From Asterias rubens (taxonomy: Eukaryota): a stretch of DNA of 64,000 bases. Below are positions 2,819 to 54,800 of the stretch, piece by piece. Position numbers and translations under genes: made by a program. The stretch is taken from contig NC_047066.1 of assembly GCF_902459465.1 (NCBI RefSeq), forward strand, positions 1,116,001 through 1,180,000. The letters run 5' to 3'. The notes beneath the pieces were generated by a model, which was not told the DNA's origin, ran no database searches, and worked only from the letters and a program-made list of their open reading frames with translations. The number at the start of each line of letters is the position of its first letter. Position 1 is the stretch's first letter.

Positions 2819-4030
2819 TTATAATCTTGTCAATTGTGAGTATTGTGAACTTCTGTCAGGAGTCGTTTCATTCAAGTTGAATTGAACATTCTCTTCACCA
2901 TGTCTCTTGACGCTACGGCCAGCTTCCACCAAGCTGTCATTGACCGTCACGAATCTAGAGCGAGCCCGGGGTCCACCCTTACCCCGGGTCGAACACGTAA
3001 ACGCCCGTATGAACGCCCTCCGGTAACGGGAATTAGTTGCGTTATAGACAATCGGGTTAGCCGCCGAATTTATCGAGACAAGAATCCGAAAGACCAAGAG
3101 AATAAAAGTCTCAGTGACTGGATTGGAGAAAAGTTGCTGTCCAGCTAGATTCGCTATCAACCCACACATGTTGAGGAACTGGAACGGGGCGTGGCAAATG
3201 AAGAACACAACCACGTTGGCCACCAGCATTGTTGTAACTTGGTGGGTTGTGCGGGAGGTACGTCGAGTGTGAACGGACTCTCTCTCAAACGCACTCCGTC
3301 CTCTGAGATTACGGATAATCTTAGTAAAGAACACGGCATTGCAGATGAGAGCAGAGAAGAATGGAACTGTCTGCAAGGCATCGAATAATAACAAATTCCA
3401 TAAAGCTGATGGTCTGCAACGTCCTACATGCTCGGGGAAGTTACTAAACTCATCAGTTCCAGGCCATTCAATGCAGACCTTTTGGTGAACAGATTGAATA
3501 GGAATTGCCCAAATGCTGAATAGGACAGCGACAGCCCAAGCACCGACCAAAAGTTTAGAAGCTCTGCTCTTGGTGTTAATCGAGAGATGCTTCAATGGGT
3601 GACATACTGCTAGGTATCTCTCGGTCGATATAAGACAAACTAAAGTAATGGAGGCAAAGTAACCCAAGTAGGCGAAGAAGTTATTAGCAATACAGCCTGG
3701 AGCACCAATGTAATGTCCGCTCGAAGGCACCCCTATCCCGAAGTAATACACTATCGGTATAGCTGCATTTTCCACGAGTAAAATCAAGTCTGCAAAGGCT
3801 AAGTTCACCAAATAGAAGTTGACGAGGGTCTGCATTGTCCGCACTCTGGCAATGACGAACAGAAAAGCACAGTTTCCCAATAACCCTACAGTGAGGACAA
3901 TGATGATGCTGATGATTTTAACTTGTATAGTTACACCAGAGAAGGTGTAACGTTGTATAACAGAGTCATCTGCAACAGTAAGATTCACAAAAGAATCACA
4001 TGCAGCAGCTACCTGATTGTTTGCCCCCAT
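2819..4030 (-). CDS. Class A (rhodopsin-like) GPCR, 403 aa, peptide-receptor-like orphan
   Basis: Seven hydrophobic segments; GN (TM1), LAFAD (TM2), ERYLAVCHP (TM3), ANPIVY (TM7); single coding exon; splice acceptor TGTCAG 2 nt before ATG. Confidence 0.93.
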   Translation of the reverse strand: MGANNQVAAACDSFVNLTVADDSVIQRYTFSGVTIQVKIISIIIVLTVGLLGNCAFLFVIARVRTMQTLVNFYLVNLAFADLILLVENAAIPIVYYFGIGVPSSGHYIGAPGCIANNFFAYLGYFASITLVCLISTERYLAVCHPLKHLSINTKSRASKLLVGAWAVAVLFSIWAIPIQSVHQKVCIEWPGTDEFSNFPEHVGRCRPSALWNLLLFDALQTVPFFSALICNAVFFTKIIRNLRGRSAFERESVHTRRTSRTTHQVTTMLVANVVVFFICHAPFQFLNMCGLIANLAGQQLFSNPVTETFILLVFRILVSINSAANPIVYNATNSRYRRAFIRAFTCSTRGKGGPRARSRFVTVNDSLVEAGRSVKRHGEENVQFNLNETTPDRSSQYSQLTRL

Positions 4031-10846: not shown

Positions 10847-12145
10847 ATGGGTTCAGATACGAGTAAAACACACTGCTCTGTAGAAAACAGTCTCAATCTC
10901 ACCACGCATTCCGAAGCTAGAGATTTCATTCTTGACCCACTGGTCATCACCCTGACTCAGTACCTGCTACCAGTCATCTTACTCGTTGGTCTGGTAGGCA
11001 ATGCCGCGTTCCTCTTCGTAGTTTACCGCATCCCGAGCATGAGGACGGTGACCAACTATTACCTTGCTAACCTTGCCGTTGCGGACTCAGTGTTCCTATC
11101 CATTGTGGTTGTCACAAGGATCTATCAGCTGGGAGTTTACGGTGAAGTTCCCACTGCTCACCTGGGATTGGCTGGTTGTATTTCAAATACTATCTTCAAC
11201 TACTCGTTCCATTTTGCGGGGATGATCCTTATAACATTGATGTCACTGGAGCGTTTTCTAGCCGTATGTCATCCTCTTCGACACCGTTTGATCAGTGGGC
11301 GTAGACGCACTATCAGGATGATTGTAGCCTGCTGGATTCTGGCAGTATTTCTAACATCATTCCAGATTCCAACTTCCATGATCTTCGACCGTCTTTGCAT
11401 CCAATGGCCTGCCTCTGAAGAGTACGCTAACCTCCCTGATGTTATTGGAAAATGTTCGGCTCTAGACAAGCCATGGGTTATCCCTATGTTCCACTCGGCT
11501 CAGACTCTTCCATTCTTCGTGGCATTCTTTGGGAGTTTTTATTTCTACGTCTCAATCGTCATCAGATTGAATAAGAGAAACTCATCAAGCGACCGTCAGC
11601 AGGTAATACGTACCCGTAACCACGTGGCCTTCATGCTGATCGTTAATGGGACAGTCTTCTTTTTGACACTCTCTCCTTTTGAAGTCACCTCCATGATACT
11701 CTTCGTCGAAGGGTTCATGGATGACGTCATTCTGATCCCTTACGATATCAGGGGGTTGTTATTTGAGGTAAATCGCATTTTGTTGTTCATCAATTCTGCC
11801 ATTAATCCCATAGTGTACACGGTTACCAACGCTAGATATAGACGTGCCTTCAAGAGAGCCTTTACGCCGGCTTCATGGAGCAACGGACGGCCGCGCCATT
11901 CCACGATTTTCAGTACTTTCCCGGAGTATTGCTCTAAATACCACATGCATATGGGAGGTTTATCGCATGGTCCCCCATCCCCACCACCATCAAAGAGCCC
12001 AATGGTTGCTAGACCCGCTACATACTCTAACACATGTTTCAATGATGACTTTTCAATTGATATCTTAAACAATGATATTCAAGGAACAATGGAAACGTTA
12101 CAAGAAAGTCAACTCGACAATTCAGAGCTTCAACAAGTCAAATAA
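10847..12145 (+). CDS. Class A GPCR, 432 aa, peptide-receptor-like orphan
   Basis: GN, LAVAD, ERFLAVCHP, INPIVY motifs; seven TM segments; Pro-rich C-tail; close paralogue of 16493-17752. Confidence 0.93.
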   Translation: MGSDTSKTHCSVENSLNLTTHSEARDFILDPLVITLTQYLLPVILLVGLVGNAAFLFVVYRIPSMRTVTNYYLANLAVADSVFLSIVVVTRIYQLGVYGEVPTAHLGLAGCISNTIFNYSFHFAGMILITLMSLERFLAVCHPLRHRLISGRRRTIRMIVACWILAVFLTSFQIPTSMIFDRLCIQWPASEEYANLPDVIGKCSALDKPWVIPMFHSAQTLPFFVAFFGSFYFYVSIVIRLNKRNSSSDRQQVIRTRNHVAFMLIVNGTVFFLTLSPFEVTSMILFVEGFMDDVILIPYDIRGLLFEVNRILLFINSAINPIVYTVTNARYRRAFKRAFTPASWSNGRPRHSTIFSTFPEYCSKYHMHMGGLSHGPPSPPPSKSPMVARPATYSNTCFNDDFSIDILNNDIQGTMETLQESQLDNSELQQVK

Positions 12146-16492: not shown

Positions 16493-17752
16493 ATGGGATC
16501 GGACGTGAGTACTGCTGAAGACTGCAATTTGAACAACACCGGTAATTTGTCAACAGCCGAGGTTGCCCAATTTTTGTTATTTAGCCCATTTGAGAAGGTC
16601 ACACGAGTGTCCGTCCTTCCAATGATTCTTGCGATTGGACTGATTGGGAATGCTGCCTTTCTCTTCACCATCGCCCAAGTCCGGAGCATGAGAACGGCAA
16701 CCAACTTTTATCTGTCGAATCTTGCTGTGTCAGACTCAGTGTTTCTGTCCATCGCTATCGTATCAAAGCTGCGAGAGTTTTCCATCTACGGGGTACCGAA
16801 CAGCGCGCCGCTACTCGGTATGCTGGGCTGCGTGCTCGGAGAGGTCACAAAGTACTTGTTCAGCTTCGCCGGTATGATTTTCATAACTTTTATATCTTTG
16901 GAGCGTTACATCGCCGTGTGTCATCCACTTCGACACCGACTCATCAACGGTTCAGGCCGGTCTGTAAAGCTCATCACACTCTGCTGGTTGGTAGCTCTAC
17001 TACTCGCTTTGTTTGTGGTACCTGCTAATCTCAAGTTCATACAGTTTTGCCTCTCATGGCCTGAAGATGAACCCGAACTGTACTCTGAGTATCCAACCAT
17101 TATTGGAAGATGTGCTGGATTAGGAGAGTGGGCTTACCAACTCTTCCATCTGACGCAGACCATACCCTTCTTCGTTGCTTTCTTTGGTAACGCCTTCTTC
17201 TACACCCGGATCCTACTCAAACTTCATCAGCGAGACACCGATGAGGACCGTAAGAGGGTGATCCGTACCCGGAACCAAGTAGCCACCATGTTGGTCGCCA
17301 ACGGAACAGTCTTCTTCTTTACCACAACCCCATTCGAAGTGACTTCATTCCTCCTCTTCGTGGAAGGATTCCTAGACTCCGAAATCATCCCACAAAACAT
17401 CAGACCATTCTTATTTGAAGTGAACCGTATCTTGTTGTACATCAACTCTGCTATCAACCCCATCGTGTACACCGTCACCAATGCTAGGTATAGACGCGCG
17501 TTTAGGAAGGCATTCATGCTGAACAAGTGCAGTAGCAGACGACTCAGGAATACAACGTTATCAAGTGTTACCCCTGCTCAAAACGCATACCAACTCAATG
17601 GTGTTGACCCGTCGATACCAATTCCGGCTTCCGAAGCTAATCGTTCAGGTGGACCGTTTCTGAATCACGGCTTTGACTTCAACGAACACACGGGAACTAA
17701 AGAGAACGAAAATGCGGCTGGCGTGTTTCACGTACCTCATCAAACTGAGTGA
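16493..17752 (+). CDS. Class A GPCR, 419 aa, tandem paralogue of 10847-12145
   Basis: GN, LAVSD, ERYIAVCHP, INPIVY motifs; TM6-TM7 nearly collinear with the upstream paralogue (RTRNQVATMLVANGTVFF vs RTRNHVAFMLIVNGTVFF). Confidence 0.93.
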   Translation: MGSDVSTAEDCNLNNTGNLSTAEVAQFLLFSPFEKVTRVSVLPMILAIGLIGNAAFLFTIAQVRSMRTATNFYLSNLAVSDSVFLSIAIVSKLREFSIYGVPNSAPLLGMLGCVLGEVTKYLFSFAGMIFITFISLERYIAVCHPLRHRLINGSGRSVKLITLCWLVALLLALFVVPANLKFIQFCLSWPEDEPELYSEYPTIIGRCAGLGEWAYQLFHLTQTIPFFVAFFGNAFFYTRILLKLHQRDTDEDRKRVIRTRNQVATMLVANGTVFFFTTTPFEVTSFLLFVEGFLDSEIIPQNIRPFLFEVNRILLYINSAINPIVYTVTNARYRRAFRKAFMLNKCSSRRLRNTTLSSVTPAQNAYQLNGVDPSIPIPASEANRSGGPFLNHGFDFNEHTGTKENENAAGVFHVPHQTE

Positions 17753-23644: not shown

Positions 23645-26600
23645 TTAAACCCTATCCTTGTTCTTGGGCGAATCAGCAAGTCCAGGAATATCGGAGAGGT
23701 TAAAGGGTGAGGTTAAACCCAACTCCTGCTGTACGGCCATCATGTCATCCACGTTCATGTCACGGACTTCTAACCAATCAGAGAGCAGCGATGCAGACAG
23801 TGGCCCAGAATCCAACTTACTGAATAAAACAGAATAAAGCATCATCAGTTTAGTAAGTTCACTTATAAGTTACTCGCTCATAAATGCAGTCCTTTGTACA
23901 AAAAGCCAGTTGCAAGTTAGATTTGAATAATGTCTGGTACAATGACTGGCTATGTCACACCTTTCTGCATGAATTTGAGTTCCTCAAACTGACAGTTTCC
24001 ATGTTTGGGGCAAACCTGGTCCAGGGCAACACCCAGTCTGGGTGTTTGTGTTGCCTCATATACAATTTTGAATTAATGTGTATGGTAAAAAAATAGTGCC
24101 TGGGTTTGCTCATCTGGAGGTTACTAAATACCAGAACAGATAAACACATTGTAGATGCTAAAATAATTATTTTTGTGAAAATGTTTTACGCTTTTCTAAA
24201 AAATTACAGCACCTCGGCAAATTAAATTGTATGGGAAGCTTTCTACCAATATTATCTTCAAACCCTGTAATTTTAATGTAAATCTGTGGACATTGTGTTT
24301 TGTGTTACAAAAAGTACCGAAGCCCTTGAGGTCTAACAAAATAGGTACATGTAATAAAATTGATTGGGTTGTGGATGGTTAGTTATTAGATATAATAATA
24401 ACTATAATAATGCATAATGCGCCATCTATCTAGTGTTAGTGTACAAGACCCTATTCCGAGGCGCAGAACAAAACACAAACATACGTATACAACAAAAGAG
24501 AAATACAGAATACAATGAAAATTATACAATGAATAACCTGAATAATCTGCCCCCGATTTCACGAAACTCATCGCAAGTAGCGAAGCATCGTAGGGTTTGC
24601 GATGCGTCGCAGACTTAGACACGTCGCGGCTGCGACGAGTTCCACAATCCATTTCACCAAACACGTCGTAAGCGCGACGAGTTGCAACTCAAACCATTTT
24701 CACTCTTAATAAAAACAACCCTTTGGACGAGGATGAACTATTAAAGTTGTACGGCTGTTTCGTGTTGTTGCAACTTGGGTCATGGAACAGTCGTATATAA
24801 TTCATTCAAGATGGCAGACACTCAGTACCGTTCCACGCACACATGGACGCACTGGCGAGAAATCGTGGAAAATGATTGGAGTAGAGTGAAAAGCGAGTGA
24901 AATGTCGTCTGCTGAAGTTGTGAAAGGCGCTGAAAGTACTCACTCAAAGTAAGTATTGTTGTTGAGTAGAATTGTGTCGATCTTTTGGGTGTCATTCTTA
25001 GAGACTACATTCAAGTATTCCGAGTGCAAATTATTACATTACAGTTACACAGTCAGTCAGTCGCTACGATAAAAAGGTCAACTGTTCGTTGTTGTTACTG
25101 AACCAAGTATCAGCCCGCTGCAGCAAAAACATGAAAAAAGCGTACGTACATGTAACTTTGTTTAACGTTATGTATCGTTTAGCGTGTTGTTCTCGTTTTT
25201 GTTTTGTGGAGCGAGGAAACGATTTACAACATTCGACAGCAACTTCAATCAAGTGAAACAATTTGGTTCTTGCAGAATATAACAATCTGCTACACTGAGT
25301 GTCAGACTCACTGTCCTGACAGTTATTTTATTTATTTAAAATAATATGTCAATAATTACAATTTACATGACATGAAATGAATCTTTGTAGAGCACCGACT
25401 GACCAGAGCCTGAGGGTAGCACACAAAAAATGTGTTGGGCATCAATCAATTCATTCATGACAATCAAAAACTGTCACAAAACGAGTCACTATCATCATCA
25501 GAATATGCTATAATAAAAATACCATAAATTATTGCTCTAGAATTGCCAGCGTCAGGAGGGTTGTGTGGGTTCCAATCCCACCCGAGTAACATGCCTGTGA
25601 TATTTTTTCACAGGACTCAGGGGAAAGTACTGAGTATACAGTGCTAACTAACACACATCGGTGTGTGGGTAAAAACCAAAATTAATATAAATTATTTATA
25701 AATATATAATTATAGCCTTATAAAATACCATATAAAATTTATTACTTAGTCATGTTAGTAGAGAAAACTCAGCAATGCTTGCGACTTACTTGGTTTTTAT
25801 TTACATTTGATGACTGTCATGACTGTAGTAGGCTAATGTAACTTTGTGCACTTTTTTGCCGATATAAACAAAATGTGTGCAGAAACACTAAAACGTCTGA
25901 CCGCTCACCAAACTGGGAGCATGAAGAAGTGGCGGTTTTGTGTGCCTTTGTGAAAGCAAATACAGCCGCGTTATTTGGAACGAACACGAAGGGAAAGAAG
26001 GCCGATGCAGGTGTGGAGAGTGTGAAGACTGAACACTGGAAACAGTTATCAGAAGTTCTTGTTGCGAGTGGGGGACGCAAGCGTGATCATGATAAGATCC
26101 GTCATAAGTGGTCAGATGTGGCCAGCAAGGCCAAGGCTTACCACCGAGAGTTTTCCAAGACAGGTGAGTAAGTTTTCCTTTTTCGGGGTACTTATTTATC
26201 CCTATTTACCGTGCAATGTATTTCATTCCATTTTATCCATCTCAGCTCTGCTCTGTGGGGATTTGCGGGGGGGGGGGGGGAGGGGGGCTTACAACCTGTT
26301 CTGCAAATATACATGTGAAGTAACACACACCAAGCTCATCATTCACAAAAACCATCTCTGCCCTCAGCCAATTACATAAACCACACTGGGTTTACAGAAG
26401 CACCTTAAAAGTATAACTCGGTCTTCGCCTCATTTAATATGAGACGCGCAAGCACAATATTTTTTGAATTCCACTCGTGCTCGTGTAATAACCAACGTTA
26501 TCCACCAATCAGATGCTCGAACTGGAGGGTGGTATAAAAACCTTTACTTACTTCCAGTGTTTTTATTAGACAGTGCGTATTGCAAGTGTCATGAAAGTGG

Positions 26601-29600
26601 GTGATGAACTGCTCTGAAATAATTTACTTGTTTTTGCTTTCAGGAGGGGGTCCGAAGCCCAAACCAAACAAGACGTATGATATTGTACTGGATGTGTTGG
26701 ACCCCATTGCCAAGGATGGCATTGTTAACCATGAAGATGGTGAGACGGACCTTAATGAGGACGTGGCCATGATCAACAATGTGGCATATGGTAACTACAT
26801 TTTCTTTTTAACTAACTATTCATGAGGATAATATTTTTTTCAACTATAAAATTTGCTGCCATGGTATTGAACTTGCACGTAATTTGTCTAATTCTTCACT
26901 TTACAACTTCCACAGTAATAGCTGCCGAAGATGCAAGACAGGCGGTTGTTGAAGATGGTGGAGAAGATGAGTGTGAGCTGGAGGGGGAGGAAGAGGAAGA
27001 GGGGGAGGAAGAGGATATGCCTGTGGTGGCAAAGAAACCAAAGCTGACCACCAAACTCAGTACATGTACAAGGATACCTAATAATGCCATATATAATGTT
27101 GAAAAGGAAAGGTTGGTAGTAGCAAAGGAACAGTTAGGCGTCTCTAAACAGATTGCAGAAGCTTTGGCTAATATCAGCCAAACCTTAAGTGTCTTGTTAA
27201 ATGTGAAGCTGCAGGAAAATGGGATGACACTAGTGAATGAGGGTTAATTGTTTTATTTGAAGATGTTTGTGTTGGTCTACCTTGTTTTGGACAGAGCCTT
27301 GCCATATTTTAATGGATAATTGTTGACTTAGCTAGAAATAAACAAAATTGTTAAATAATATAAATAAATTATTTAATTGATAAATTATTAAAGTAATATA
27401 TTATTAAATAATATAAATAAGTTGTTTCTTCATTTATATTTTTATTTTTTTCTTGGGGGGTGGGGGGGAGGTTTCGTTTAACATCCTCTTAATTTGCCCA
27501 TAATTATTGCGGGAATTACTTTATAGTTTCAGTCAAAGCTTTAAAGGCAGTGGACACTATTGGTAATTACTCAAAATATTTATTAGCATAAAACCTTACT
27601 TGGTAACGTATAATGGGGAGAGGTTGGTTGTTACCAGACATTTTTGTTTTGGGTTTGGGGGGGGGGGGGCAGCGGGTGCAAAAGGCCATTTCTAGACATC
27701 CTAGTTCATGTATTTGATAAAAATAACTGAGTGTGCCAATTGGATGATGTCAATACAACATTTTATTCAAACTTCAACACTTTATATTCTCCTAACGTTG
27801 CATTTCAAATCTTAAAGTACACAACTTATTCTAATGCTCATGTTGAGATACACCAAGTGAGAAGACTGGTCTTTAACAATTACCAATAGTGTCCAGTGTC
27901 TTTAACAGAGGTTCTGAAGCTTTCCTTTTTGATTAGTAATTTCAGTTGTACATGTAATTTATAACAACAAAATATCATGGTCTGTTTACTGTATACCTAT
28001 TTACATAATTGTATAAAAAGAATTGTGTTTGTTCTTAAAAGAAAATCATTAAAAGACACATTCAGTCTCAAGGAAAAGAGAACACAATAATGAATCATGT
28101 ATGTGCATTTTTTTGTGTTGTTATTAATTTTAGTGCCAAAGAATTCGAAAAAAAACCGAACAGTGTGTCAAATTCAGCTCCTTGACCCCTCTCCCCTAGG
28201 CCAAGTCTGGGGATTATACATGTTATCACACAAGCTCGAGTGGAACAGCGAAAAATATAGCGCGTCTGCGTCCCATATTCAAATTTACTTCTGCCCGGGT
28301 GCACATAGTGTACTGCAATTAAATTTGGTAGTTGCAAGCTTGCTTTTGACAAATTTGAAGGAGAAATATAGTAATTTTCTGCCAATATCAGAATAATGCG
28401 CAAGGGTTGAGAAAATGTGAACTGCAAATAAAAAATGTGGGGGTGTTTAAACCTTTAATAATGACCAGTGTTTATAACCGGTTGTGAGTGGATACTCTGG
28501 GCTAGTCTTGGTGCAAGACGTTTCTTGTTACGGGCGATGCGGGCGCTGTTGGTTAGTTGGCCGTGCTGTGTGTGAAAGGAAAATGAGACACCTTGCACCA
28601 AGACTATGTGCGCACGAACAGATTCGCAAACTGTTGTCTCAGTCATAACAATGCAACACACGGAGCTCAAGCACGTCGGAAATGGATAAGCTTAACAGAG
28701 TTTCTTACTTTATGATTTATTATGCTTTTTTAAACAAAAAAGGTATTTATGAATGGGAATAAAAGACTAGTGACTTGTTCTTAAACGGCCGTTTAAAACC
28801 TTGCATGTTTTTTTGCCGTGCAAAAAAGGCCCTCGTCGAACACATGCCATGACCCTGCCGGTTTTAACTGCCGTTTAAGAACTCGTCGCTACCCTTTTAA
28901 TCGCTTATTTACAACCCCCTGACAAATCTTGTTCTCTCTCTTAGAAATAGCGATTGATTAGTTCGTTCCTCTTGACTGTGCCATCATGCAAAGGGCCGTT
29001 GTACTGAATGCCTTCATCTTCATAGTTGTCGTCTGCATCTTCATCAAGATCACCATCAAATTCAGGCTCCCTGAGACTCTTGGAGATGTTAAAGAGTACA
29101 CAACAAGCTTTTATGATGAAGCATGCCCTTTCTGGGGATACCCTCATTCCAAGGGAAAGGCAAGGAAATCTTCTCTTGAGCTGTCCAAAGGTTTGCTCAA
29201 TGACAACCCGTGTTCGTCTATGACTCCTGAGGCAAAAAAATGCACGATAATTTGAAACAAGTATGTTATGTATTGTTTATCTTTCTTTAATATTGCAATT
29301 TATTTATTTATGTCATAACATTGCGATAATAATTTAAACCTGCCACATGAACTCACTATCAATTATATTGTAACTGATAGTTTGTTAATAGTAATGGAGG
29401 CTTAAATCAATATTAAACTACTATACCTATTGTATCTTCTTTCAGCATTTGTTGCTGGATCTTGTACAGGGGTCATCAGCCATGGACGAAGGGCATACCC
29501 TGTGTCGCCAATGAGAACTCCATGGAATCTGGTTGCAGGTAGATAAATATGTATTACTTTTTTGTGATTAGGTAAAGCTAAGGATTTATAAAGATGATTG

Positions 29601-32600
29601 AAACTTTGTTACTTTGTTTGGTTCAGTGTTGACAAAAAACAAAAAAACAAAGTTTGGCTTAATCTGTTGTTTGAGTCACGAGAAAATAGTTGAAAACCTT
29701 GCACATTTGTACTATATAGACACATTATTTCAATTTGAGTTGTGTCAACAAACTATATATCTTCATCTTCTGTTTTTTTCGCCTTTGACAGGATTTCAGA
29801 AGGAAACATCCCATGAAGACTGGTACTGGCATGATCTTCAGAAACAGTGAGCTTACAAACTGATAAAATTGTGAATACTGTACCAATACAATCGGACATT
29901 TGATTTTTAAGTTTTATTTTATGTTTATTCCTATTAAAATTTTTGTAATGTTCAATATAAAAAGGCATGGTGATGTTAGCTAATTTCTGCAAACAATTTC
30001 CCTCACTTTGTGCAAATTTCAGATGTTTAATTTGGATGAAATTGTTTTTCTTTTTCTTTTGTACACCAGGTAGAAAGAAAATTTCTGACAAACCTCCCAT
30101 TTTCAAATCTGTCACTGATACGGCTTCCATGAAAAATAGCACTGTCATGCATACTCCCCGGCCATCTGGCAACCACATTTATGATGTTAAACTTCGCATC
30201 ACAGATCACTTGGGCGTTTATGCTGTGGAACCCTTTTCTGTTGACAAACAGATGTTCATTATCACCTAATGGTGCTCCATAGAGGCGAATGTGGCTGCAG
30301 TCAACTGCTCCAATCACATCAGGGAAGTTGGCCAGTGCAAAAAATTCTCTTTTTTTTTGCATTTCCTCTTGCAAGTTTGCAGGAAACCTGATGACTACGT
30401 TTGCCAGTCTGCAAAATGCCCGTGTTACTCCATGTACTATCCTGCACACTGATGGTACACTGACGGTATGAAGGTCTCCATGCACAGTGTAAAATGAACT
30501 TGTGGCATAAAACCTTAATGCTGTCAGTACCTGCATGTGAGCTGGAATTGCATTGCTACGCTGTGAAAAGAAAAACACTTTCAGCATTTCATTTCATAGT
30601 TTTGTAGGACAAAAAACACAATGTCCGCAGATTTACACTAAACTTACACAGTTTGAAGATAATGATAGTAGAAAGCTTCCCTGAAAATATTACGTGCTGA
30701 GGTGCTGTAGTTTAGGGAAATGAGTAAAACAGTGGCATGCAAATAATGGGAGACTTTCTGGGACGATAGAGGGCAGCAGACTTACCGGGTAAATCCATTG
30801 TTCTCAGAATTATGCGCATGTTCAGAACTACGTAAACAATGGAAATTTACCCGGTATGTCTGCTGCCACCTAGCGTTGGAAAGTCTCCTATTGTCGTCTC
30901 ATGAGACGAAAATTATTTTAATCATTTACCAACGTATTTTTATGACATTGTTTTACTCATTTCTCAAAAACTGCAGCACCTCAGTAAGTATTATTTGAAG
31001 GGGAGCTTTCCACTATCATTATCTTCAAACCCTGTAAGTTTAATGTAAATCTATGGACATTTTGAAAAGGTACCCAAATCCTTTATGGCAAGTTTATATT
31101 ACTCTCCATGTTGCAAGGGTTTACCAATATTTCATGTGATATTTCATGTGATAGAAATAATAGAGAACTTATCATGCCCTTTTACTATAAAATAAACAAA
31201 TTTTTAAGCAGTAAAATATTTTGTGTGTTATAATAAAGTGTATTTTTTGTTTCATGTTTGAAAAAGCTGGTCAAATTTAATATAAACAGTCTGTGAAGAG
31301 TAGTCAAAACTAGTTGTTTGTATTAGAATAAGCTTATTTCTGGTGTAAATAAAGAAACTTATTTTCATATGTCTATCTGACTTAATTTCTTTGTGTCAGT
31401 AATATACATTGGTATAGGACATTATATGCTGGCCCAATGTTCCCTATTGGGGGTTTCCTCTAATCATAAACTGGTATTTCTTAGTTTTCTCTCGTGTATC
31501 TATGTGCTCTATGCTTTTTAGGATCCTTTGTGTTTCATAACCAGATATAACTTTATATAATTCATTTTGATTGGCCAACTTTGTTTGGATTGGACATAGT
31601 GTGGAAGAGTTTTGTGGGTTGGTTTATTAGTAGTTTTACTTTACAAAAAAAAGAAGAAAAAAGGAAATTGATAAATAAATAAAAACTTGAAGGGAATAAT
31701 TATAAACAAATCAGGATATTTTTTTAAAGAGAGCTACAATGTATTGGTATTTAACAATAATATTTCAGAAACTTGAGTTTGCTGCCCAAACCAACAGCGC
31801 CACCACTGTCTAGAACGAAAAAAAAGATGGGGGAGTTCCCCGCTGGTACCAGTCTTGTTCGTGCTGAGAAGTGTGGTTGCGCTCTGGGCGGCAGCTGGGC
31901 CTTGACTGAAGGCTAAAGATCATTGTGTGTGGGTTGGTTAATGATCAGTCGGCAGTCATCAGCCGCCGCCGCGTGAGGGTCAATCCACAAGAGGGCGGCA
32001 TTGTAAAAATAGACGTAAAATCACGTTGTCTCTCATCAGACAACGATTAGTTTGTTGCACCCCCCCCCCCCTCATATCACCCAAACATTATTTTATTTAG
32101 GCCTATAGTTCTATATGGAAATTTAAAAAACAAACTAAAAGGGGCCAGCCGTCATTGGACGTTTAAAAGCTTACCCTTGTGACACGTTCAATGTCTCCAC
32201 GAACCATTTCGACGATGTGATAAATACCCCGTCTGGTAAATCTATACCGACGGAATATTTCATCGTCAGTTAGACTGTCGAGAGGGTTAGTTCTGTCGCG
32301 AAAAAGTCTTTCTCTCCGCAACGCTCTTCCGGCTTCTCGATTTGCAAGCAGCATTAACGCCATTTTGCATGTATTTGTGCGCTATCAATGAGATATCGCA
32401 TCGTAAGACGACCCTTTGGGTAGTCGCAACTTACGACGTGTTCTTCCTCGTTGTCAAGGAACTTGCGACGTATCCGACGCATCGTAACTTTCATGAAATC
32501 GATTTATACGCATCGCAACTTACGACGTGTAACCGGTCGCAACTTGCACTTGCGACGCGTCGCAGCGCTTCGTGAAATCGGGGGCAGGTATGATAGGATA

Positions 32601-35600
32601 GAATGACAACATGAGTTTTAATCCTCATTCTTTACCTTGCTCCTCTTGGAGAACCTAAAGAATTTTCTTCAAACCAATCTTCAATATCCAGGCTGAGTCC
32701 GTACCCTGTTCCATTCCCCTTAGGCGTAACTTGAAGGATTGGTGGTAGACTGTCTTCCATAGCTGACTTAGATAGCTGGTGGATAACATGAGCTAGCTCT
32801 GGAGGGGAGGCGGTGGTACGAGGGTTTAGTGGGAGAGCTTGAGTCATTAGAGTCTGCCGGTTGTTGCTCAAGTAGTGGGTGTTGTGCTTGTAAGGATAGC
32901 TTGTTTGCAATCCTGTTTAAACAACAAATTAATATCAATTTCAATTTGTGTTACACCATGTCAGTAAATTTGTTCCTTTTTAAACATGTATTTTACAGAT
33001 GGGTTTATACCAAAAGGCGTCGCTCTGCGAAGCTCTATTTTTAGGTTTGGTAAAAACGAAGATACAACAAATGGGCAACTAACCTGTTGGGCTCGTATAA
33101 CTTGTTGTATACTTTGATTTCATGGCATCTTCATAAGCTGGTGGAGACTGCTGAATGTTGTGAGGTGGTGATGGAGTCTCCCGATCTGAGTAGTGGCGTG
33201 ATCGATACTGCTGGAAGCTATTGTCCATCTTACTGGCCTGGGAGTCTGCAGAGGGTGACGTCATTGCTGGTGGACACCCACTAAGGTATTGAGTAGTTAA
33301 ACTACTGGTGGACATGGAGGCTTTACTCGACAGCGCTTCAACAGCTGATGAGTGTGGTTGATCTCTTGTGTTCACATTGTTAGAGTTATTCCCTTCGCTC
33401 CCGGTGTAGGGAACCTGGGTAGGGTTACAAGCGAGAGATTGGCTGAAAAAAGGTGTTGTACCTCCAACGGTGAAGTTCCCCGATCCAGCCAAAGACTGCA
33501 TCTTGTAAGACGTCTGCTGATGGCGTTGCCCTTGCGATGACGTAGGGAGAGAAAATGACGATGATGGGAATGTACCGCTGTAACTGGACACTAAGTGAGT
33601 GTTCTGTGGTTGGGACAGTAAGCTATTTGTATCCATTTCTCTTTGAGACTGGATTTCTCCCTTTGAGACCATCTCACTTTGGGCTGCATCTTGTTCCTTA
33701 CTTTCGCTTGAGAGGGGCTCCTGTGGAAGTTGGGCACTCTGGAAAACCCCTACGGAAGTCACGGCATTAATGGAGTCAACATGAGTGTTGGAATCCTTCC
33801 CTGGTTCGGTCACAATCACTGAAGGTTCTGCGATACTCTGTGGAGCATTCATGACATCTACGTTGGACTCTTGCTCCTTGTTTTTACCCTGCATCTTGTT
33901 CCATCTCTCAAGCATACTCCTGTCTTCTTCGGTAAGCAAGACAGACTTGGCTTCATCATCGTTTTGTGCGTTCTTCTTACCCTTTCCCTTCCCTTTCTTC
34001 TGACGCTCCTGAGATCGACGGAGCTTCTGGCGTCTTTTCTGTTCACGTTCTCGTTGGCGTGCTAGGGCAGTTATTGGCATCTTACCTCCACCTTTTTCGC
34101 CCTCGGAATCTGAAAGTTGTTAATAAAAAATATATTAGAAATCACAATATATGACAGAATGAAAATCTGTTGGTAAACTTAGATTTTAAAACATCCTGAG
34201 TGTGGGTTTTTGGTCTGGTATGGCTTGCCAAAAACAACTGTTTGTTTGCTGTAATCTGACTAGCTAATCACACCCTATCAAGCTACATGTTGCCCTATAT
34301 AGGACTCTTCCTCTGTACACAGCAGAAAAATATATGCTGCCATGGAATGTGAATCTGTTGAAATTGGTGCTTTCTTGCAGGTAAGATTTGAGTTATAAAA
34401 TGAAGCTTTGAAAATTTTCCGCCCCAGAAATGGACCCTGATATCCAGGACGTCACTGTAGTACAATACGAAAGTGTAAAGCCGCCAGGGCTACCTATCAA
34501 GCATACAAATTGTATACATGAATTTAAAAGTTTCCTGGCTGCATGTTTCAACTCTTAAATGTCACAAGAATTAAAGATTTAACTAAACAAGTTTTTAAAT
34601 CTGATTCATTAAAAAAAAGACTCCACTTCATATTTTTAGTACTTAAAAATATTTCTTCAAATATACCTTTTTTTTCTAGCATTTTAAACGACCACAGAAA
34701 TTTATTTGTCAGGCCTAATTGACAGGATGTTGAAACCCAAGTTTAATATAAAGAAATGAAAATCTAATACACAGTGTAATAATAACAAAACAACACAATC
34801 AAATAAGATGAGAAAAGAAAAGGTTAGTCTATCTTTTTTAGGCTCGGAGAAATACTCTGATAGAGTTTAAACTTCAGGACATTAACAAATGGCAAGATGA
34901 AAAAAGCTGACACTTTCTTAATACACAGCAGCTTCACATACAGTACATATACCACAGAGAACAGACTTTCTGATCCAACAAGTTTTAGCAAGAATTACAA
35001 AGCACTGAATGTTTATGTCAACACTTCAGGAATGATTGCAACAAAATGGATCATACGTCTCGCCAAAAATTATAATTTTCAGAACTCCAGATGACATGAA
35101 AAAGCTGCCAACTGTTGCATCTTGCAATCAGGAAGATGTTGAACAACAAACAATCAGGGAGATATTTACAATTACAATCAAATAAAAGGGGAAAAGTTCC
35201 CATAATAATCAGGGAGATTTTCCAAATGTGTCAATCTAAACATTTAGAATAGTTTATCTTCAGGGAACTATTTGCAGAGTCAAGGAGAGTTGGCAGCTCT
35301 GTGTGATTGGAGTACAACTAAATTACCTGACCTGGGTCAATAAAAAGAAATCACACTTTACGACTTCATGTTCATTCTGCAGAGTGACACAGAGTAAAAC
35401 AATCAATTCTACACACTGAATTAATATCTCACCTTTTCTCATTTTGTTCTTCAAAGCAGAGTTAAGCAGGGCAGCTTTGATGAGTTTCTTAGTGTCATCT
35501 GAAATTGTTTTCTGTCCTGCGTTTTCATAAACCAGAGCCTGCTCTACAGATTTGCCGACAGCTTCTTCAACGGGTGCAGCTATACGTGAAGAATCCGCAA

Positions 35601-37851: not shown

Positions 37852-38105
37852 TGTGAAGTCTATCTCTGGGTCAACAAGTCAAATCTGAAACAGGATGAAT
37901 ATATTAAAATATTATTAAGACATGATTAAAAATCTAATTTTCAAGCACATTGCTTGTCACAATAAAATGAAAGAAATTCAAAAAAAACGAAATGGCTCAA
38001 ATAGACTGGAACCAGAAGTGCATGCTATGCAGCGAGGGTTAAAATTTTGAGACAGTTAAAACCTAATGTCAGCTAATTGAGTGCGCATCAAAAGAGGGCG
38101 GTATG

Positions 38106-39457
38106 TTGTAAACTGAAAGTGGCTGTTACTGTACCAACATCCACACAGAACAAGGTTTACACTAGACCTTGTAAACTGAAAGTGGCTGTACCAACATCCA
38201 CACAGAACAAGGTTTACACTAGACCTTGTAAACTGAAAGTGGCTGTACCAACATCCACACAGAACAAGGTTTACACTAGACCTTGTAAACTGAAAGTGGC
38301 TGTACCAACATCCACACAGAACAAGGTTTACACTGAAAGTGGCTGTACCAACATCCACACAGAACAAGGTTTACACTAGACCTTGTAAACTGAAAGTGGC
38401 TGTACCAACATCCACACAGAACAAGGTTTACACTGAAAGTGGCTGTACCAACATCCACACAGAACAAGGTTTACACTGAAAGTGGCTGTACCAACATCCA
38501 CACAGAACAAGGTTTACACTGAAAGTGGCTGTACCAACATCCACACAGAACAAGGTTTACACTGAAAGTGGCTGTACCAACATCCACACAGAACAAGGTT
38601 TACACTAGACCTTGTAAACTGAAAGTGGCTGTACCAACATCCACACAGAACAAGGTTTACACTGAAAGTGGCTGTACCAACATCCACACAGAACAAGGTT
38701 TACACTGAAAGTGGCTGTACCAACATCCACACAGAACAAGGTTTACACTGAAAGTGGCTGTACCAACATCCACACAGAACAAGGTTTACACTGAAAGTGG
38801 CTGTACCAACATCCACACAGAACAAGGTTTACACTGAAAGTGGCTGTACCAACATCCACACAGAACAAGGTTTACACTAGACCTTGTAAACTGAAAGTGG
38901 CTGTACCAACATCCACACAGAACAAGGTTTACACTGAAAGTGGCTGTACCAACATCCACACAGAACAAGGTTTACACTGAAAGTGGCTGTACCAACATCC
39001 ACACAGAACAAGGTTTACACTAGACCTTGTAAACTGAAAGTGGCTGTACCAACATCCACACAGAACAAGGTTTACACTAGACCTTGTAAACTGAAAGTGG
39101 CTGTACCAACATCCACACAGAACAAGGTTTACACTGAAAGTGGCTGTACCAACATCCACACAGAACAAGGTTTACACTGAAAGTGGCTGTACCAACATCC
39201 ACACAGAACAAGGTTTACACTGAAAGTGGCTGTACCAACATCCACACAGAACAAGGTTTACACTGAAAGTGGCTGTACCAACATCCACACAGAACAAGGT
39301 TTACACTGAAAGTGGCTGTACCAACATCCACACAGAACAAGGTTTACACTGAAAGTGGCTGTACCAACATCCACACAGAACAAGGTTTACACTAGACCTT
39401 GTAAACTGAAAGTGGCTGTACCAACATCCACACAGAACAAGGTTTACACTAGACCTT
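38106..39457. repeat. Two-variant minisatellite (43-bp and 57-bp units), about 28 units, upstream of the first MAPK7 coding exon
   Basis: Core ACTGAAAGTGGCTGTACCAACATCCACACAGAACAAGGTTTAC with an optional extra ACTAGACCTTGTAA. Confidence 0.95.
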
Positions 39458-40371
39458 TTATTATGGATTTTGTTTCTATTGTAAAGTTGTAAAATTTTGA
39501 CCCATTCATGGTTAATCATGCCTAGTTCATCGCAAGCCTCCACTACATGTATGTATATATATGTGAACCTTTTTTAGCCCTAAAAATTTGCAATCTTGCC
39601 AACAATCAAAAGACTCGCAGACTGTTGCTAAAATTAAAAGCCAAATACCCGGATCTCAAACAAAAGGGTCAAATTTCTGCGTAATCTCACAGTCTGCCTT
39701 GTATACGCAAGACACACAACGCGCATATCTTGCGTTGCGTTTGTGTGTTAACGCTGAGCAGTCAAGAATACATAAGTTTATGTCTTGTTACACTGTGAGG
39801 ATATGATCAAAACAGGAATTTCTTTAACGTTGGGACTCTGAGAGCTGCATTATTTCACGAAAATTATGGATTTGTGAGAAATATATGACGACAAAAACCC
39901 ACCGTAGAAAAATAAATGTTGCCATTGAATGTGAATCTGTTGAAATTAGTGGCTTTGATTTGAGTTATGAAGAAACGGGCCCTAATACATGTATGCAGGA
40001 CTCTGAATCTGTGGACAGCACAGAGGGCTACCCTCTACCCTACTCCTAGAACTACAGTATGAGGTTCCTTCGGCTATCGTCTCCACGAGTACCCCTACCC
40101 TAGCCTAGGCAGCCCCCTGATGCAGTTTTAACTTGTCGATGATGCAGTGAGTGATTGTGTGTGGCATGTTTGCCCATTTTGTATGAGAGCTGGGTACTTT
40201 ACGCAACAGTGATGTCATGAGTGCGGGGCGAATCAAATTCATTTGGTACTAAATACAGTATTACCCCAAAACAAAACTGAAAATATCATTAATTGTGTAG
40301 AAAAAAATGCACAATATTTGTAAATTTCTTTCAATTCAAAAGAATTAAGCTAGATACATGTATGTAGATTG

Positions 40372-51800: not shown

Positions 51801-54800
51801 ATGACGGCTTCAAGCACATCTAGAATCCGTATTCCCAGATCCCATATGTTATCATCATGGGTACTTTGTGCATTAGGAATTGTGCTCTCTGTTTATGCAC
51901 TGTACGTAGAAACATCAAAGGAATCGAACCCTGATTTTACGGCGATGTGTGACATTGGTCAAAGCGTTAGCTGTTCCAAAGTGTTTACATCTAGGTAAGT
52001 AACTGTTGTGGTTAGCGGAGTTTCACAAATACTATCAGTATCATCCAGTCAGTAGCTTGTGTTAAAACGAATTAATCTACATATTATATATGAAGTTATA
52101 GTCTTTCTGTGCAACAAGTAGGCGTTTTAATTATAAGCAAATAAATATTTTGTTTAGGGTTGGCCTTTCATCAAGGCCAACCCAAGGGCAACCTCGTTAA
52201 ATGTCTGTCGCGGTGATATGATAGATAGCGTTCTGACTCTATTCCTAATTGAGTTCCCCGTGATTCCCATGGTATTTTCGTCGCTAGACTGCTGGCTCCA
52301 CGAAACTACTGCTCTCACGACTACCGTCCCATGTAAATGGGGAGTAGAACTATAGTTAGAAGTTGACAACCAGCAGTTGCGCGAGAGCAGTGTTCTCGCG
52401 AGAGCACCGCCACAACTTGACTATCTTACCGCGGCAGACCATTAACAACCTGTGCGCAACCCTGCCTTGTGGTGTAAATTGTTCTTAATCTTACCATGTA
52501 GAGCATGCAATAAACACTATGATCTTTAACTATACTCGCACTAGTACTATAATACACTAGTCTACCGGGTAGGCTAGTTAGTGTTCAGACAACTCGTCCA
52601 TAGGACAACTCGACCATTACAACTCGACGGTTGAGACAGCTCGACCATTCGGACAACTCGACAGACTTTTTTTTCAACTGTCAGACAAGTCGACGGATTG
52701 CCGTGACGGGGGCCTCACCACAACAATGACCACCTATGTACTCAATAAATTATGCACCCATCTTTGTAGTCTTTATTCGGTTTATGCTCTTTAAGTTTTT
52801 TGCGAAGATTTCAAATGAATAAACGAAGGCTTAATTTTCCCTGATTATGGCAGGTACGGAAGAGGGTTTGGAATTATTGGGCGAGTTCTAGGAGAACATC
52901 ATATATTGAATCAACCTAACAGCATATTTGGTATTCTTTTCTACTTTCTTCAAGTTTTAATTGGTAAGTACTTTAAACTAACTAACTGTTTCCCTTTTTC
53001 TTCTGAAATTGTGACCAGTTATTTTTTTTAACACAACAAATAGGCTAAATAATGTTTTTGTGTTGCGCGCTCTCAGTATCTCATAAGAGAAAAAGAAGTA
53101 AAGTACCCCCTGCAACAAGCAGAGAAAGGGCCTTGGTGCCCTTGCCCATGAAGAATGAAGAATCGGCAGGGTAGGAGTGGGATGTCTGATCATCAGGTAG
53201 AGAAAGGGCCTTGGTGCCCTTGCCCATGAAGAATGAAGAATCGGCAGGGTAGGAGTGGGATGTCTGATCATCGTAGAGAAAGAGCCTTGGTGCCCTTGCC
53301 CATGAAGAATGAAGAATCGGCAGGGTAGGAGTGGGATGTCTGATCATCAGGTAGAGAGAGAGCCTTGGTGCCCTTGCCCATGAAGAATGAAGAATCGGCA
53401 GGGTAGGAGTGGGATGTCTGATCATCAGGTAGAGAGAGAGCCTTGGTGCCCTTGCCCATGAAGAATGAAGAATCGGCAGGGTAGGAGTGGGATGTCTGAT
53501 CATCAGGTAGAGAGAGAGCCTTGGTGCCCTTGCCCATGAAGAATGAAGATTCGGCAGGGTAGGAGTGGGATGTCTGATCATCAGGTAGAGAGAGAGCCTT
53601 GGTGCCCTTGCCCATGAAGAATGAAGAATCGGCAGGGTAGGAGTGGGATGTCTGATCATCAGGTAGAGAGAGAGCCTTGGTGCCCTTGCCCATGAAGAAT
53701 GAAGAATCGGCAGGGTAGGAGTGGGATGTCTGATCATCAGGTAGAGAGAGAGCCTTGGTGCCCTTGCCCATGAAGAATGAAGAATCGGCAGGGTAGGAGT
53801 GGGATGTCTGATCATCAGGTAGAGAGAGAGCCTTGGTGCCCTTGCCCATGAAGAATGAAGAATCGGCAGGGTAGGAGTGGGATGTCTGATCATCAGGTAG
53901 AGAGAGAGCCTTGGTGCCCTTGCCCATGAAGAATGAAGAATCGGCAGGGTAGGAGTGGGATGTCTGATCATCAGGTAGAGAGAGAGCCTTGGTGCCCTTG
54001 CCCATGAAGAATGAAGAATCGGCAGGGTAGGAGTGGGATGTCTGATCATCAGGTAGAGAGAGAGCCTTGGTGCCCTTGCCCATGAAGAATGAAGAATCGG
54101 CAGGGTAGGAGTGGGATGTCTGATCATCAGGTAGAGAGAGAGCCTTGGTGCCCTTGCCCATGAAGAATGAAGAATCGGCAGGGTAGGAGTGGGATGTCTG
54201 ATCATCAGGTAGAGAGAGAGCCTTGGTGCCCTTGCCCATGAAGAATGAAGAATCGGCAGGGTAGGAGTGGGATGTCTGATCATCAGGTAGAGAGAGAGCC
54301 TTGGTGCCCTTGCCCATGAAGAATGAAAAATCGGGCCTGGAGTAGGCTATGCAAAAAAAGTTTTTTCATCAACATTTTTTAGGACATCTTTGCTTTATTG
54401 AAATCATTGCATTATGTTTAATCAGCCACAACATTGTGAACATTTGTTTAGGATAAGGACTTTAGGCTTGATTTAGGACAAGGTAACTTTACGCTCTGCC
54501 TGTTCATAATTCCTGGCAGTTCATACCGCAGGGGAAAAAAAGGTTTGAAATTCATTAAGTTTGTAGTGATTCCTTCAGTTGTTTCTGACAAGGTGTATAG
54601 TAATTAACAATCCAGGTTAAAATACCATCTTTTTAATCCAGGATATACTTTATAGATTAAAAAATAAAGAATTAAAACAACTATTATCAAATTTATCAAC
54701 TCAAGCATTGTGGTACAATGTATGTGTGTCAGCGTTGTAAAAGAGACTAAAGTTCAAGACTAAGATCTTCCGTCTGAGACCAAGACATTAATGTCCGAGT

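Follow-up and report, generated by a model that had tools for sequence, protein, structure and literature searches.

A young, probably mobile PIF/Harbinger transposon with two genes, assigned to the NuwaI group by its CWG target, in the last intron of a MAPK7-like gene of Asterias rubens

The element, its two genes and the host intron

The window analysed here is a stretch of 64,000 nucleotides from the sea star Asterias rubens (NC_047066.1, positions 1,116,001 to 1,180,000; C5:1116001-1180000 in the 417.6 Mb assembly that was searched). Between window positions 24547 and 32587 it carries a PIF/Harbinger element of 8,041 bp, which encodes a DDE transposase and a Myb/SANT-like partner protein and lies within the last intron of a gene annotated as mitogen-activated protein kinase 7-like (MAPK7). 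Judged by its sequence features, this is probably an autonomous-type PIF/Harbinger (PHIS) transposon of the CWG-targeting NuwaI group, one that is young and still mobile. The features on which this reading draws are listed below in window coordinates.

23648..23821, minus strand: last coding exon of the MAPK7-like host gene, residues 1060-1117, from the mapping of XP_033627623.1
24547..24549, no strand: left copy of the target-site duplication (TSD), CTG; in the other copies CWG varies beside a constant terminal inverted repeat (TIR), and the empty site of Asterias amurensis has a single CTG
24550..24565, plus strand: left 16-bp TIR, with 170 genomic ends at one mismatch or less
24550..24832, plus strand: 5' subterminal non-coding region, CpG-rich, upstream of the Myb ATG; about 85-91% shared with 715-bp MITEs (miniature inverted-repeat transposable elements)
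24619..24668, plus strand: two ACACGTCG subterminal motifs, putative binding sites, at 24619-24626 and 24661-24668, from the 8-mer count and the offsets in MITEs
24902..27247, plus strand: Myb/SANT-like partner gene, 268 amino acids (aa); exons 24902-24948, 25883-26163, 26644-26790 and 26916-27247
27541..27905, no strand: short nested repeat in the spacer that separates the genes, its inverted arms 28 nt long; carried by each of the three full copies
28941..32363, minus strand: DDE transposase gene, 347 aa; exons 32363-32175, 30560-30094, 29528-29427 and 29226-28941; catalytic D150, D227 and E263
30601..31064, no strand: nested MITE-like repeat with 97-nt inverted arms, in transposase intron 1; common to all three full copies
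32365..32584, plus strand: 3' subterminal non-coding region, adjoining the transposase ATG; about 86-93% shared with MITEs across the full 220 bp
32434..32530, minus strand: two inverted ACACGTCG subterminal motifs, at 32434-32441 and 32523-32530, from the 8-mer count and the offsets in MITEs
32569..32584, minus strand: right 16-bp TIR, from the inverted-repeat match and the comparison of copies
32585..32587, no strand: right TSD copy, CAG and not CTG, its middle base differing from the left copy; from the comparison of copies and the A. amurensis site
32636..34110, minus strand: MAPK7-like coding sequence of the host (residues 626-1059), upstream of the element; the match is 87%, so an intron is still inside

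The two genes are convergent and both models are uninterrupted. That of the transposase has four exons and 1044 nt (347 aa, free of stop codons), that of the Myb partner four exons and 807 nt (268 aa, open frame), and every intron of either runs from GT to AG. In family and homology searches, which were made one exon at a time or with database proteins, Pfam DDE_Tnp_4 (PF13359) matched transposase exons 2, 3 and 4 (E 2e-12, 6e-3 and 7e-9, respectively) and Myb_DNA-bind_5 matched Myb exon 2 (E 1e-12). When 20 homologues from echinoderms, molluscs, insects, fish, a coral and a nemertean are aligned, the columns of D150, D227 and E263 do not vary.

The transposase model is well supported, because two database proteins agree with it. 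The NCBI protein P0125 (‘putative nuclease HARBI1 [Asterias rubens]’, 218 aa) is the annotated remnant of a second copy of the element, on C24, and has the same exon 2/3 and 3/4 joins as the window transposase. The Patiria miniata protein P0162 (343 aa, 62-67% identical) is collinear with the model, its residues 1-63 lying on exon 1 and exon 2 continuing from residue 64 without a gap. The Myb model is based on its open frame, on splice sites that are canonical and on the fact that the C24 copy preserves it, with an in-frame deletion of 12 bp as the only change. A database protein search with P0125, over a length range including 347 aa, found no 347-aa entry for the window copy. Outside A. rubens the nearest protein is 81% identical, an open reading frame (ORF) in ENA; relatives at 58-67% identity come from Patiria miniata and Asterias amurensis and are all labelled ‘putative nuclease HARBI1’, and more distant ones from a brittle star (50-64%) and from sea urchins, sea cucumber, molluscs, insects and fish (about 38-55%).

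At its ends, the segments 24547-24565 and 32569-32587 are complementary at 19 of 19 positions, which an earlier sequence-only reading of this DNA had described as perfect 19-bp TIRs. The perfect complementarity stands; the length has to be divided. Comparison with two other full copies and about 30 short relatives places the true TIR at 16 bp (CCCCCGATTTCACGAA) and makes the outer three bases a CWG TSD, the apparent 19-bp match arising because the left flank of the window copy is CTG and its right flank CAG. That the three bases are a genuine duplication follows from paralogous and orthologous empty sites, each of which holds a single CWG. The C24 copy lies inside a repeat, of which four paralogous copies read ...GGA-CAG-GTG... 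with a single CAG, and the filled site reads CAG-element-CAG. At the orthologous site A. amurensis has ...AATAAT-CTG-ATATGA..., and the window has ...AATAAT-CTG-element-CAG-GTATGA.... The single CWG of the empty sites also excludes a model without any TSD, in which an element ending in G...C would have been inserted bluntly into CWWG.

Genome-wide, 115 ends have CTG or CAG adjoining an exact TIR, and the palindromic target preference extends beyond the CWG, which tends to be preceded by c and followed by g. At the base that follows the right TSD in the window (32588), A. rubens has G where A. amurensis has A (L048 8619); this may be an ordinary substitution, or it may be linked to the insertion, G being preferred at that target position.

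Inward of the TIRs, the motif ACACGTCG occurs four times within the terminal 300 bp of both ends, two per end and in inverted orientation, and no copy of this 8-mer was found in the element interior. Its core, CACGTCG, has identical offsets in the MITEs, and these motifs are likely to be protein-binding sites. The ratio of observed to expected CpG is 1.4-1.9 at the element ends vs 0.6 inside.

Short inverted-repeat elements are nested in the transposon at 27541-27905, 28757-28902 and 30601-31064, and a related copy lies just outside it at 24201-24305. As the first and last of these are found in all three full copies, they were already present in the common ancestor. These two larger repeats were gained before the last rounds of transposition and explain part of the unusual 8-kb length.

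The host gene was identified by the NCBI protein ‘mitogen-activated protein kinase 7-like’, XP_033627623.1 (P0277, 1117 aa), which maps to the minus strand of the window with residues 626-1059 at 34110-32638 and residues 1060-1117 at 23821-23648. The MAPK7 proteins of crinoid, brachiopod and annelid map likewise. Because residues 1059 and 1060 map on either side of the element, it lies within the last intron of the gene. The exon before it ends at 32636 with a donor GT at 32635-32634 (GTAAAG), and the TSD starts 48 nt into the intron, which measures 8,814 bp in A. rubens vs about 783 bp in A. amurensis. The annotated protein splices across the element, and its last exon is 100% identical to that of A. 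amurensis. An insertion 48 bp from the splice donor that lengthens the intron about elevenfold may affect transcript processing. The transposase gene and MAPK7 run in the same direction. The host exon (32636) ends after codon base 2 and transposase exon 3 (29528) starts at codon base 3, and since these phases are complementary a splice from MAPK7 to the transposase would be in frame.

Most of what the sequence-only reading had called at 24547-32587 is thus borne out by the searches and mappings above: a two-gene Harbinger element with TIRs (here joined by a TSD), an uninterrupted 347-aa transposase with the D, D and E that it named, an uninterrupted 268-aa Myb/SANT partner, three canonical introns in each gene, the convergent layout and the location inside the ERK5 gene.

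Full-length copies, miniature relatives and age

The assembly contains three full copies with both genes, at the following places.

C5, the window copy: transposase open; Myb open
C10:12389244-12397244: transposase with a 2-bp deletion in exon 3 and a stop at codon 247; Myb intron-2 donor lost through a 3-bp deletion
C24:313207-321212: transposase with 14-bp and 5-bp deletions, in exons 1 and 2; Myb open, with an in-frame 12-bp deletion

Only the window copy, one of the three, has both frames open. Identity among the copies is 98.1-99.5% (C10 99.3-99.5%, C24 98.1%), and the three have unrelated flanks and a TSD of their own each. Older fragments on C15 are 91-96% identical. Coding differences between the full copies comprise five non-synonymous and no synonymous changes in the transposase, and in the Myb gene two distinct non-synonymous sites (one of them common to the C10 and C24 copies) and one synonymous. 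With coding differences almost all non-synonymous, the copies show no sign of selection. At the transposase coding sites that vary among the three, the state found in the window copy always occurs in at least one other copy.

The 16-bp TIR, with one mismatch or less, occurs at 170 places in the genome vs 7 for a reversed control, and these 170 ends correspond to about 85 elements. The sequence-only reading had proposed checking copy number and identity across the genome, and the three full copies and these TIR-sharing elements are the outcome. Most of the elements are MITEs of about 715 bp, which retain 283 bp from the start of the element and 220 bp from its end, that is, the non-coding regions outside both start codons. 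Their ends are about 85-93% identical to the window element, and their divergence from their own majority state is 1.4-5%. The MITEs L015 and L016 (C6:15016939 and C3:18232511), which lie at unrelated loci, differ by one substitution in 713 bp. Shorter forms also exist, with ends 93-99% identical to the window element and so closer to it than those of the 715-bp MITEs:

159-160-bp mini-MITEs, element ends only: C6:8458994-8459159, C10:1951603-1951767, C10:15997929-15998093, C7:11502090-11502254 and C82:9600-9764
340-bp form, element ends only: C6:18480125-18480470

In the flanking non-coding DNA, A. rubens and A. amurensis are 88.6-93.2% identical. Copies and MITEs are far less diverged than this, which makes the autonomous copies and the MITE burst much younger than the split of these species. 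A look at the sister species had likewise been proposed in the sequence-only reading, and the orthologous site in A. amurensis is empty, with its single CTG. The insertion at this CTG in the last intron of the MAPK7-like gene postdates the split from A. amurensis.

The genome also holds further Harbinger-like families, with transposases that are 63%, 50% and 44-47% identical; those at C5:3155453-3159397, C58:47773-54391 and C15:12195961-12196425 are 63%, 50% and 47% identical. In at least two of the families, at C5:3155453/3158933 and on C58, a Myb-like ORF lies convergent to the transposase as it does here. Many transposase-like matches cluster on C15 between 12 and 14.6 Mb. In C15:13663734-13683318 there are four Myb-like matches (38% identical, one TGA each) about 4.8-9.7 kb apart on a single strand, which resemble a tandem unit.

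Elsewhere in the window, three intronless ORFs of 403-432 aa, at 2819-4030 (minus), 10847-12145 (plus) and 16493-17752 (plus), appear to be paralogous seven-transmembrane receptors upstream of the MAPK7 region. Long ORFs at 53081-54317 (minus) and 38056-39543 consist of minisatellite-like tandem repeats that are open in several frames, and they are probably not genes.

Discordant CWG flanks

The differing flanks of the window copy recur in the family. In 39 elements the TIR is exact and both flanks are CWG; the middle bases of the flanks agree in 23 of these and disagree in 16. Left and right middle bases are unassociated (Fisher p 0.33), and the data reject a plain duplication followed by change in no more than 10% (p 4e-7). 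Point mutation was considered as the cause of the discordance and rejected: divergence among the copies is 1-5%, flanks of CCG or CGG do not occur, and discordant elements are not older than concordant ones (Mann-Whitney p 0.26).

Several individual cases illustrate the pattern. One member of the near-identical pair L015/L016 is discordant. For the window copy the target was CTG, according to the A. amurensis site, and the left flank kept CTG while the right flank is CAG. The discordant MITE L027 (CAG/CTG) has a diverged paralogous site (L005) with a single CAG; a search with the flank of L047 for a closer paralogous empty site of a discordant MITE yielded just short repeats that end before the insertion point. 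Finally, L017 and L039, which belong to the youngest MITE clade and lie at unrelated loci, both have CAT on the right and CAG on the left. Theirs are the sole two CAT ends in the genome, and the shared CAT flank looks as though it was inherited from the donor.

As a tentative explanation, which we hold to be possible though doubtful, an excised element may keep the 3-nt strands of its old TSD, which would pair with the CWG target and be ligated, leaving part of the new TSD donor-derived. Repair or replication would afterwards resolve the mismatched W position. PIF/Harbinger excision is precise and has been modelled as staggered cleavage at the TSD (PMC4561436). Against a carry-over of this kind, mPing elements leaving TCA/TCA flanks had TTA or TAA flanks at the landing site in 45 of 46 cases (PMC4561436), and the present family shows neither an end bias nor a tree signal for either flank. 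Lacking both, the family also gives no support to a version in which one fixed end always carries the flank. A hypothetical parallel is offered by piggyBac, in that ends keeping TSD-derived overhangs would fit the flank behaviour of the window family; the piggyBac transposase family is, however, unrelated, and its TSD is TTAA. If flank carry-over were true, these flanks would be natural evidence on the cleavage geometry of PIF/Harbinger, that is, on how the superfamily cuts and joins DNA, and the family, with its single intact autonomous copy, would be a direct test system.

Activity and relation to known systems

Three features by which membership of PHIS is judged are present in the window element: DDE_Tnp_4 with a D-D-E triad, a separate Myb/SANT-like gene, and TIRs with a 3-bp TSD. 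Transposition in this superfamily requires both proteins. Its flanks are CWG and so do not match the canonical PIF/Harbinger TSD, 5'-TWA-3'. The groups have been defined by TSD composition, and NuwaI as combining CWG with ORFs for a DDE transposase and a Myb/SANT protein (Han et al. 2015, Mob DNA 6:12, PMC4482050); the TSD found here is 5'-CWG-3'. NuwaI elements are confined to animals, average about 4.5 kb and have TIRs of 12-61 bp that usually start with GGG (PMC4482050). The TIR of the window element begins with CCCCC and not with GGG, which is a typical trait of the group and not a defining one.

The steps by which such an element would move can be sketched by analogy with Harbinger3_DR and Ping/Pong. 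The Myb-like protein would bind the subterminal repeats and recruit the transposase, which would cut at the boundary of TIR and TSD and insert the element at a CWG with a 3-nt stagger. Since the window copy is the only full copy with both frames open, it is the best candidate for having supplied the proteins by which the roughly 85 elements with its TIR were moved. The sequence-only reading had called the element potentially active. This is a fair reading, because it is the only intact copy, has perfect TIRs, and shares these TIRs with elements that moved very recently, as the MITE pair with one difference in 713 bp shows; the 98.1-99.5% identity of full copies with TSDs of their own and the empty A. 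amurensis site agree with it.

Several points weigh against a still mobile element with two functional genes. The exon joins of the Myb gene are predicted solely from the open frame and the GT-AG sites. About 1 kb of nested repeats and a length nearly twice the NuwaI average (about 4.5 kb, PMC4482050) may lower mobility. A copy so young could keep its frames open by chance. In addition, the 715-bp MITEs are about 9-10% diverged from the ends of the window element, so their recent mobiliser could be another source, lost or unassembled.

Taken further, some of these doubts lead to the alternative that the window copy is recently dead or silenced, having moved not long ago but being no longer expressed or competent, its open frames reflecting youth and nothing else. 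Of the three copies, all equally young, two already carry frameshifts, the differences between copies bear no mark of purifying selection, and the CpG-rich termini (observed/expected 1.4-1.9) are possible targets of methylation. However, at all variable coding sites the state of the window transposase recurs in one or both of the other copies, the TIRs are perfect, and MITEs with identical TIRs have moved very recently. On balance we think it unlikely that the copy is dead.

The sequence-only reading had also offered an early stage of domestication, in which the gene pair, like HARBI1/NAIF1, would be kept for a host function inside the MAPK7 locus. Both frames are indeed open, the transposase is co-directional with the host gene, and relatives carry the name ‘putative nuclease HARBI1’ at NCBI. 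Yet TIRs and TSD are intact, the family is multi-copy with frameshifted, decaying paralogues, and the orthologous site in A. amurensis is empty. The coding comparison, a further check that the sequence-only reading had suggested, also speaks against it, with five non-synonymous and no synonymous differences in the transposase and two to one in the Myb gene. This suggestion therefore does not hold up, and we regard domestication as very improbable. Least probable of all, and hardly worth entertaining, is that the three copies are a single locus, repeated in the assembly as duplicates or haplotigs: although the C24 copy is on an unplaced 829-kb scaffold, all three flanks are unrelated, each copy has its own TSD, and the repeat flanking the C24 copy has four other copies, all without the element.

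A young and probably mobile NuwaI-type transposon accordingly remains our preferred reading. To our knowledge, few naturally intact PIF/Harbinger elements are known from animals. Experimental work has mostly been done on rice Ping/Pong or on a reconstructed fish element. Here, a structurally complete element of the CWG type (NuwaI) in an echinoderm comes together with very young MITE partners and a dated insertion that is absent in the sister species, and this combination makes it a usable candidate for transposition assays and a marker of recent change in the Asterias genome. In other respects this is ordinary transposon annotation, and the sister copy already bears the label ‘putative nuclease HARBI1’ at NCBI.

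Among known systems, the window element most resembles NuwaI elements such as NuwaI-4_DRer (PMC4482050), with which it has in common the 5'-CWG-3' TSD, a DDE-only transposase with a Myb/SANT ORF, an animal host and a TIR length within the range. It is unlike them in the CCCCC start of its TIR, in its length (8.0 kb vs about 4.5 kb, partly owing to the nested repeats) and in its echinoderm host, and its placement is by TSD and gene pair. The survey that described the group listed 16 animal genomes as hosts (12 fish, one beetle, one crustacean, one mollusc and one anthozoan) and no echinoderm (PMC4482050). The element is thus a new member of a known group, and its host phylum is new relative to that survey of 2015.

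The domesticated vertebrate HARBI1/NAIF1 genes and the MSANTD2 family (PMC9392472) are homologous to the encoded proteins, as reflected in the NCBI label of the sea-star relatives. The domesticated genes have, however, lost TIRs and TSDs, exist in single copy with orthologues in different species and evolve under purifying selection; the window element has none of these traits.

More broadly, maize PIF, rice Ping/Pong with mPing, zebrafish Harbinger3_DR and Harbinger-1M_cIno of C. inopinata all have two genes, DDE_Tnp_4 and a 3-bp TSD, as the window element does. Canonical PIF/Harbinger elements also share with it the extended palindromic target preference, which is typical of the superfamily (PMC2836001), and Tourist-like MITEs that consist of the ends only (PMC2836001, PMC13668399). 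The target of the canonical elements is TWA, in contrast to CWG for the window element. Reconstructed Harbinger3_DR was reportedly found to be active experimentally by Sinzelle et al. in 2008. The activity of Ping/Pong and of the C. inopinata element has been shown experimentally, whereas that of the window element is predicted from its sequence.

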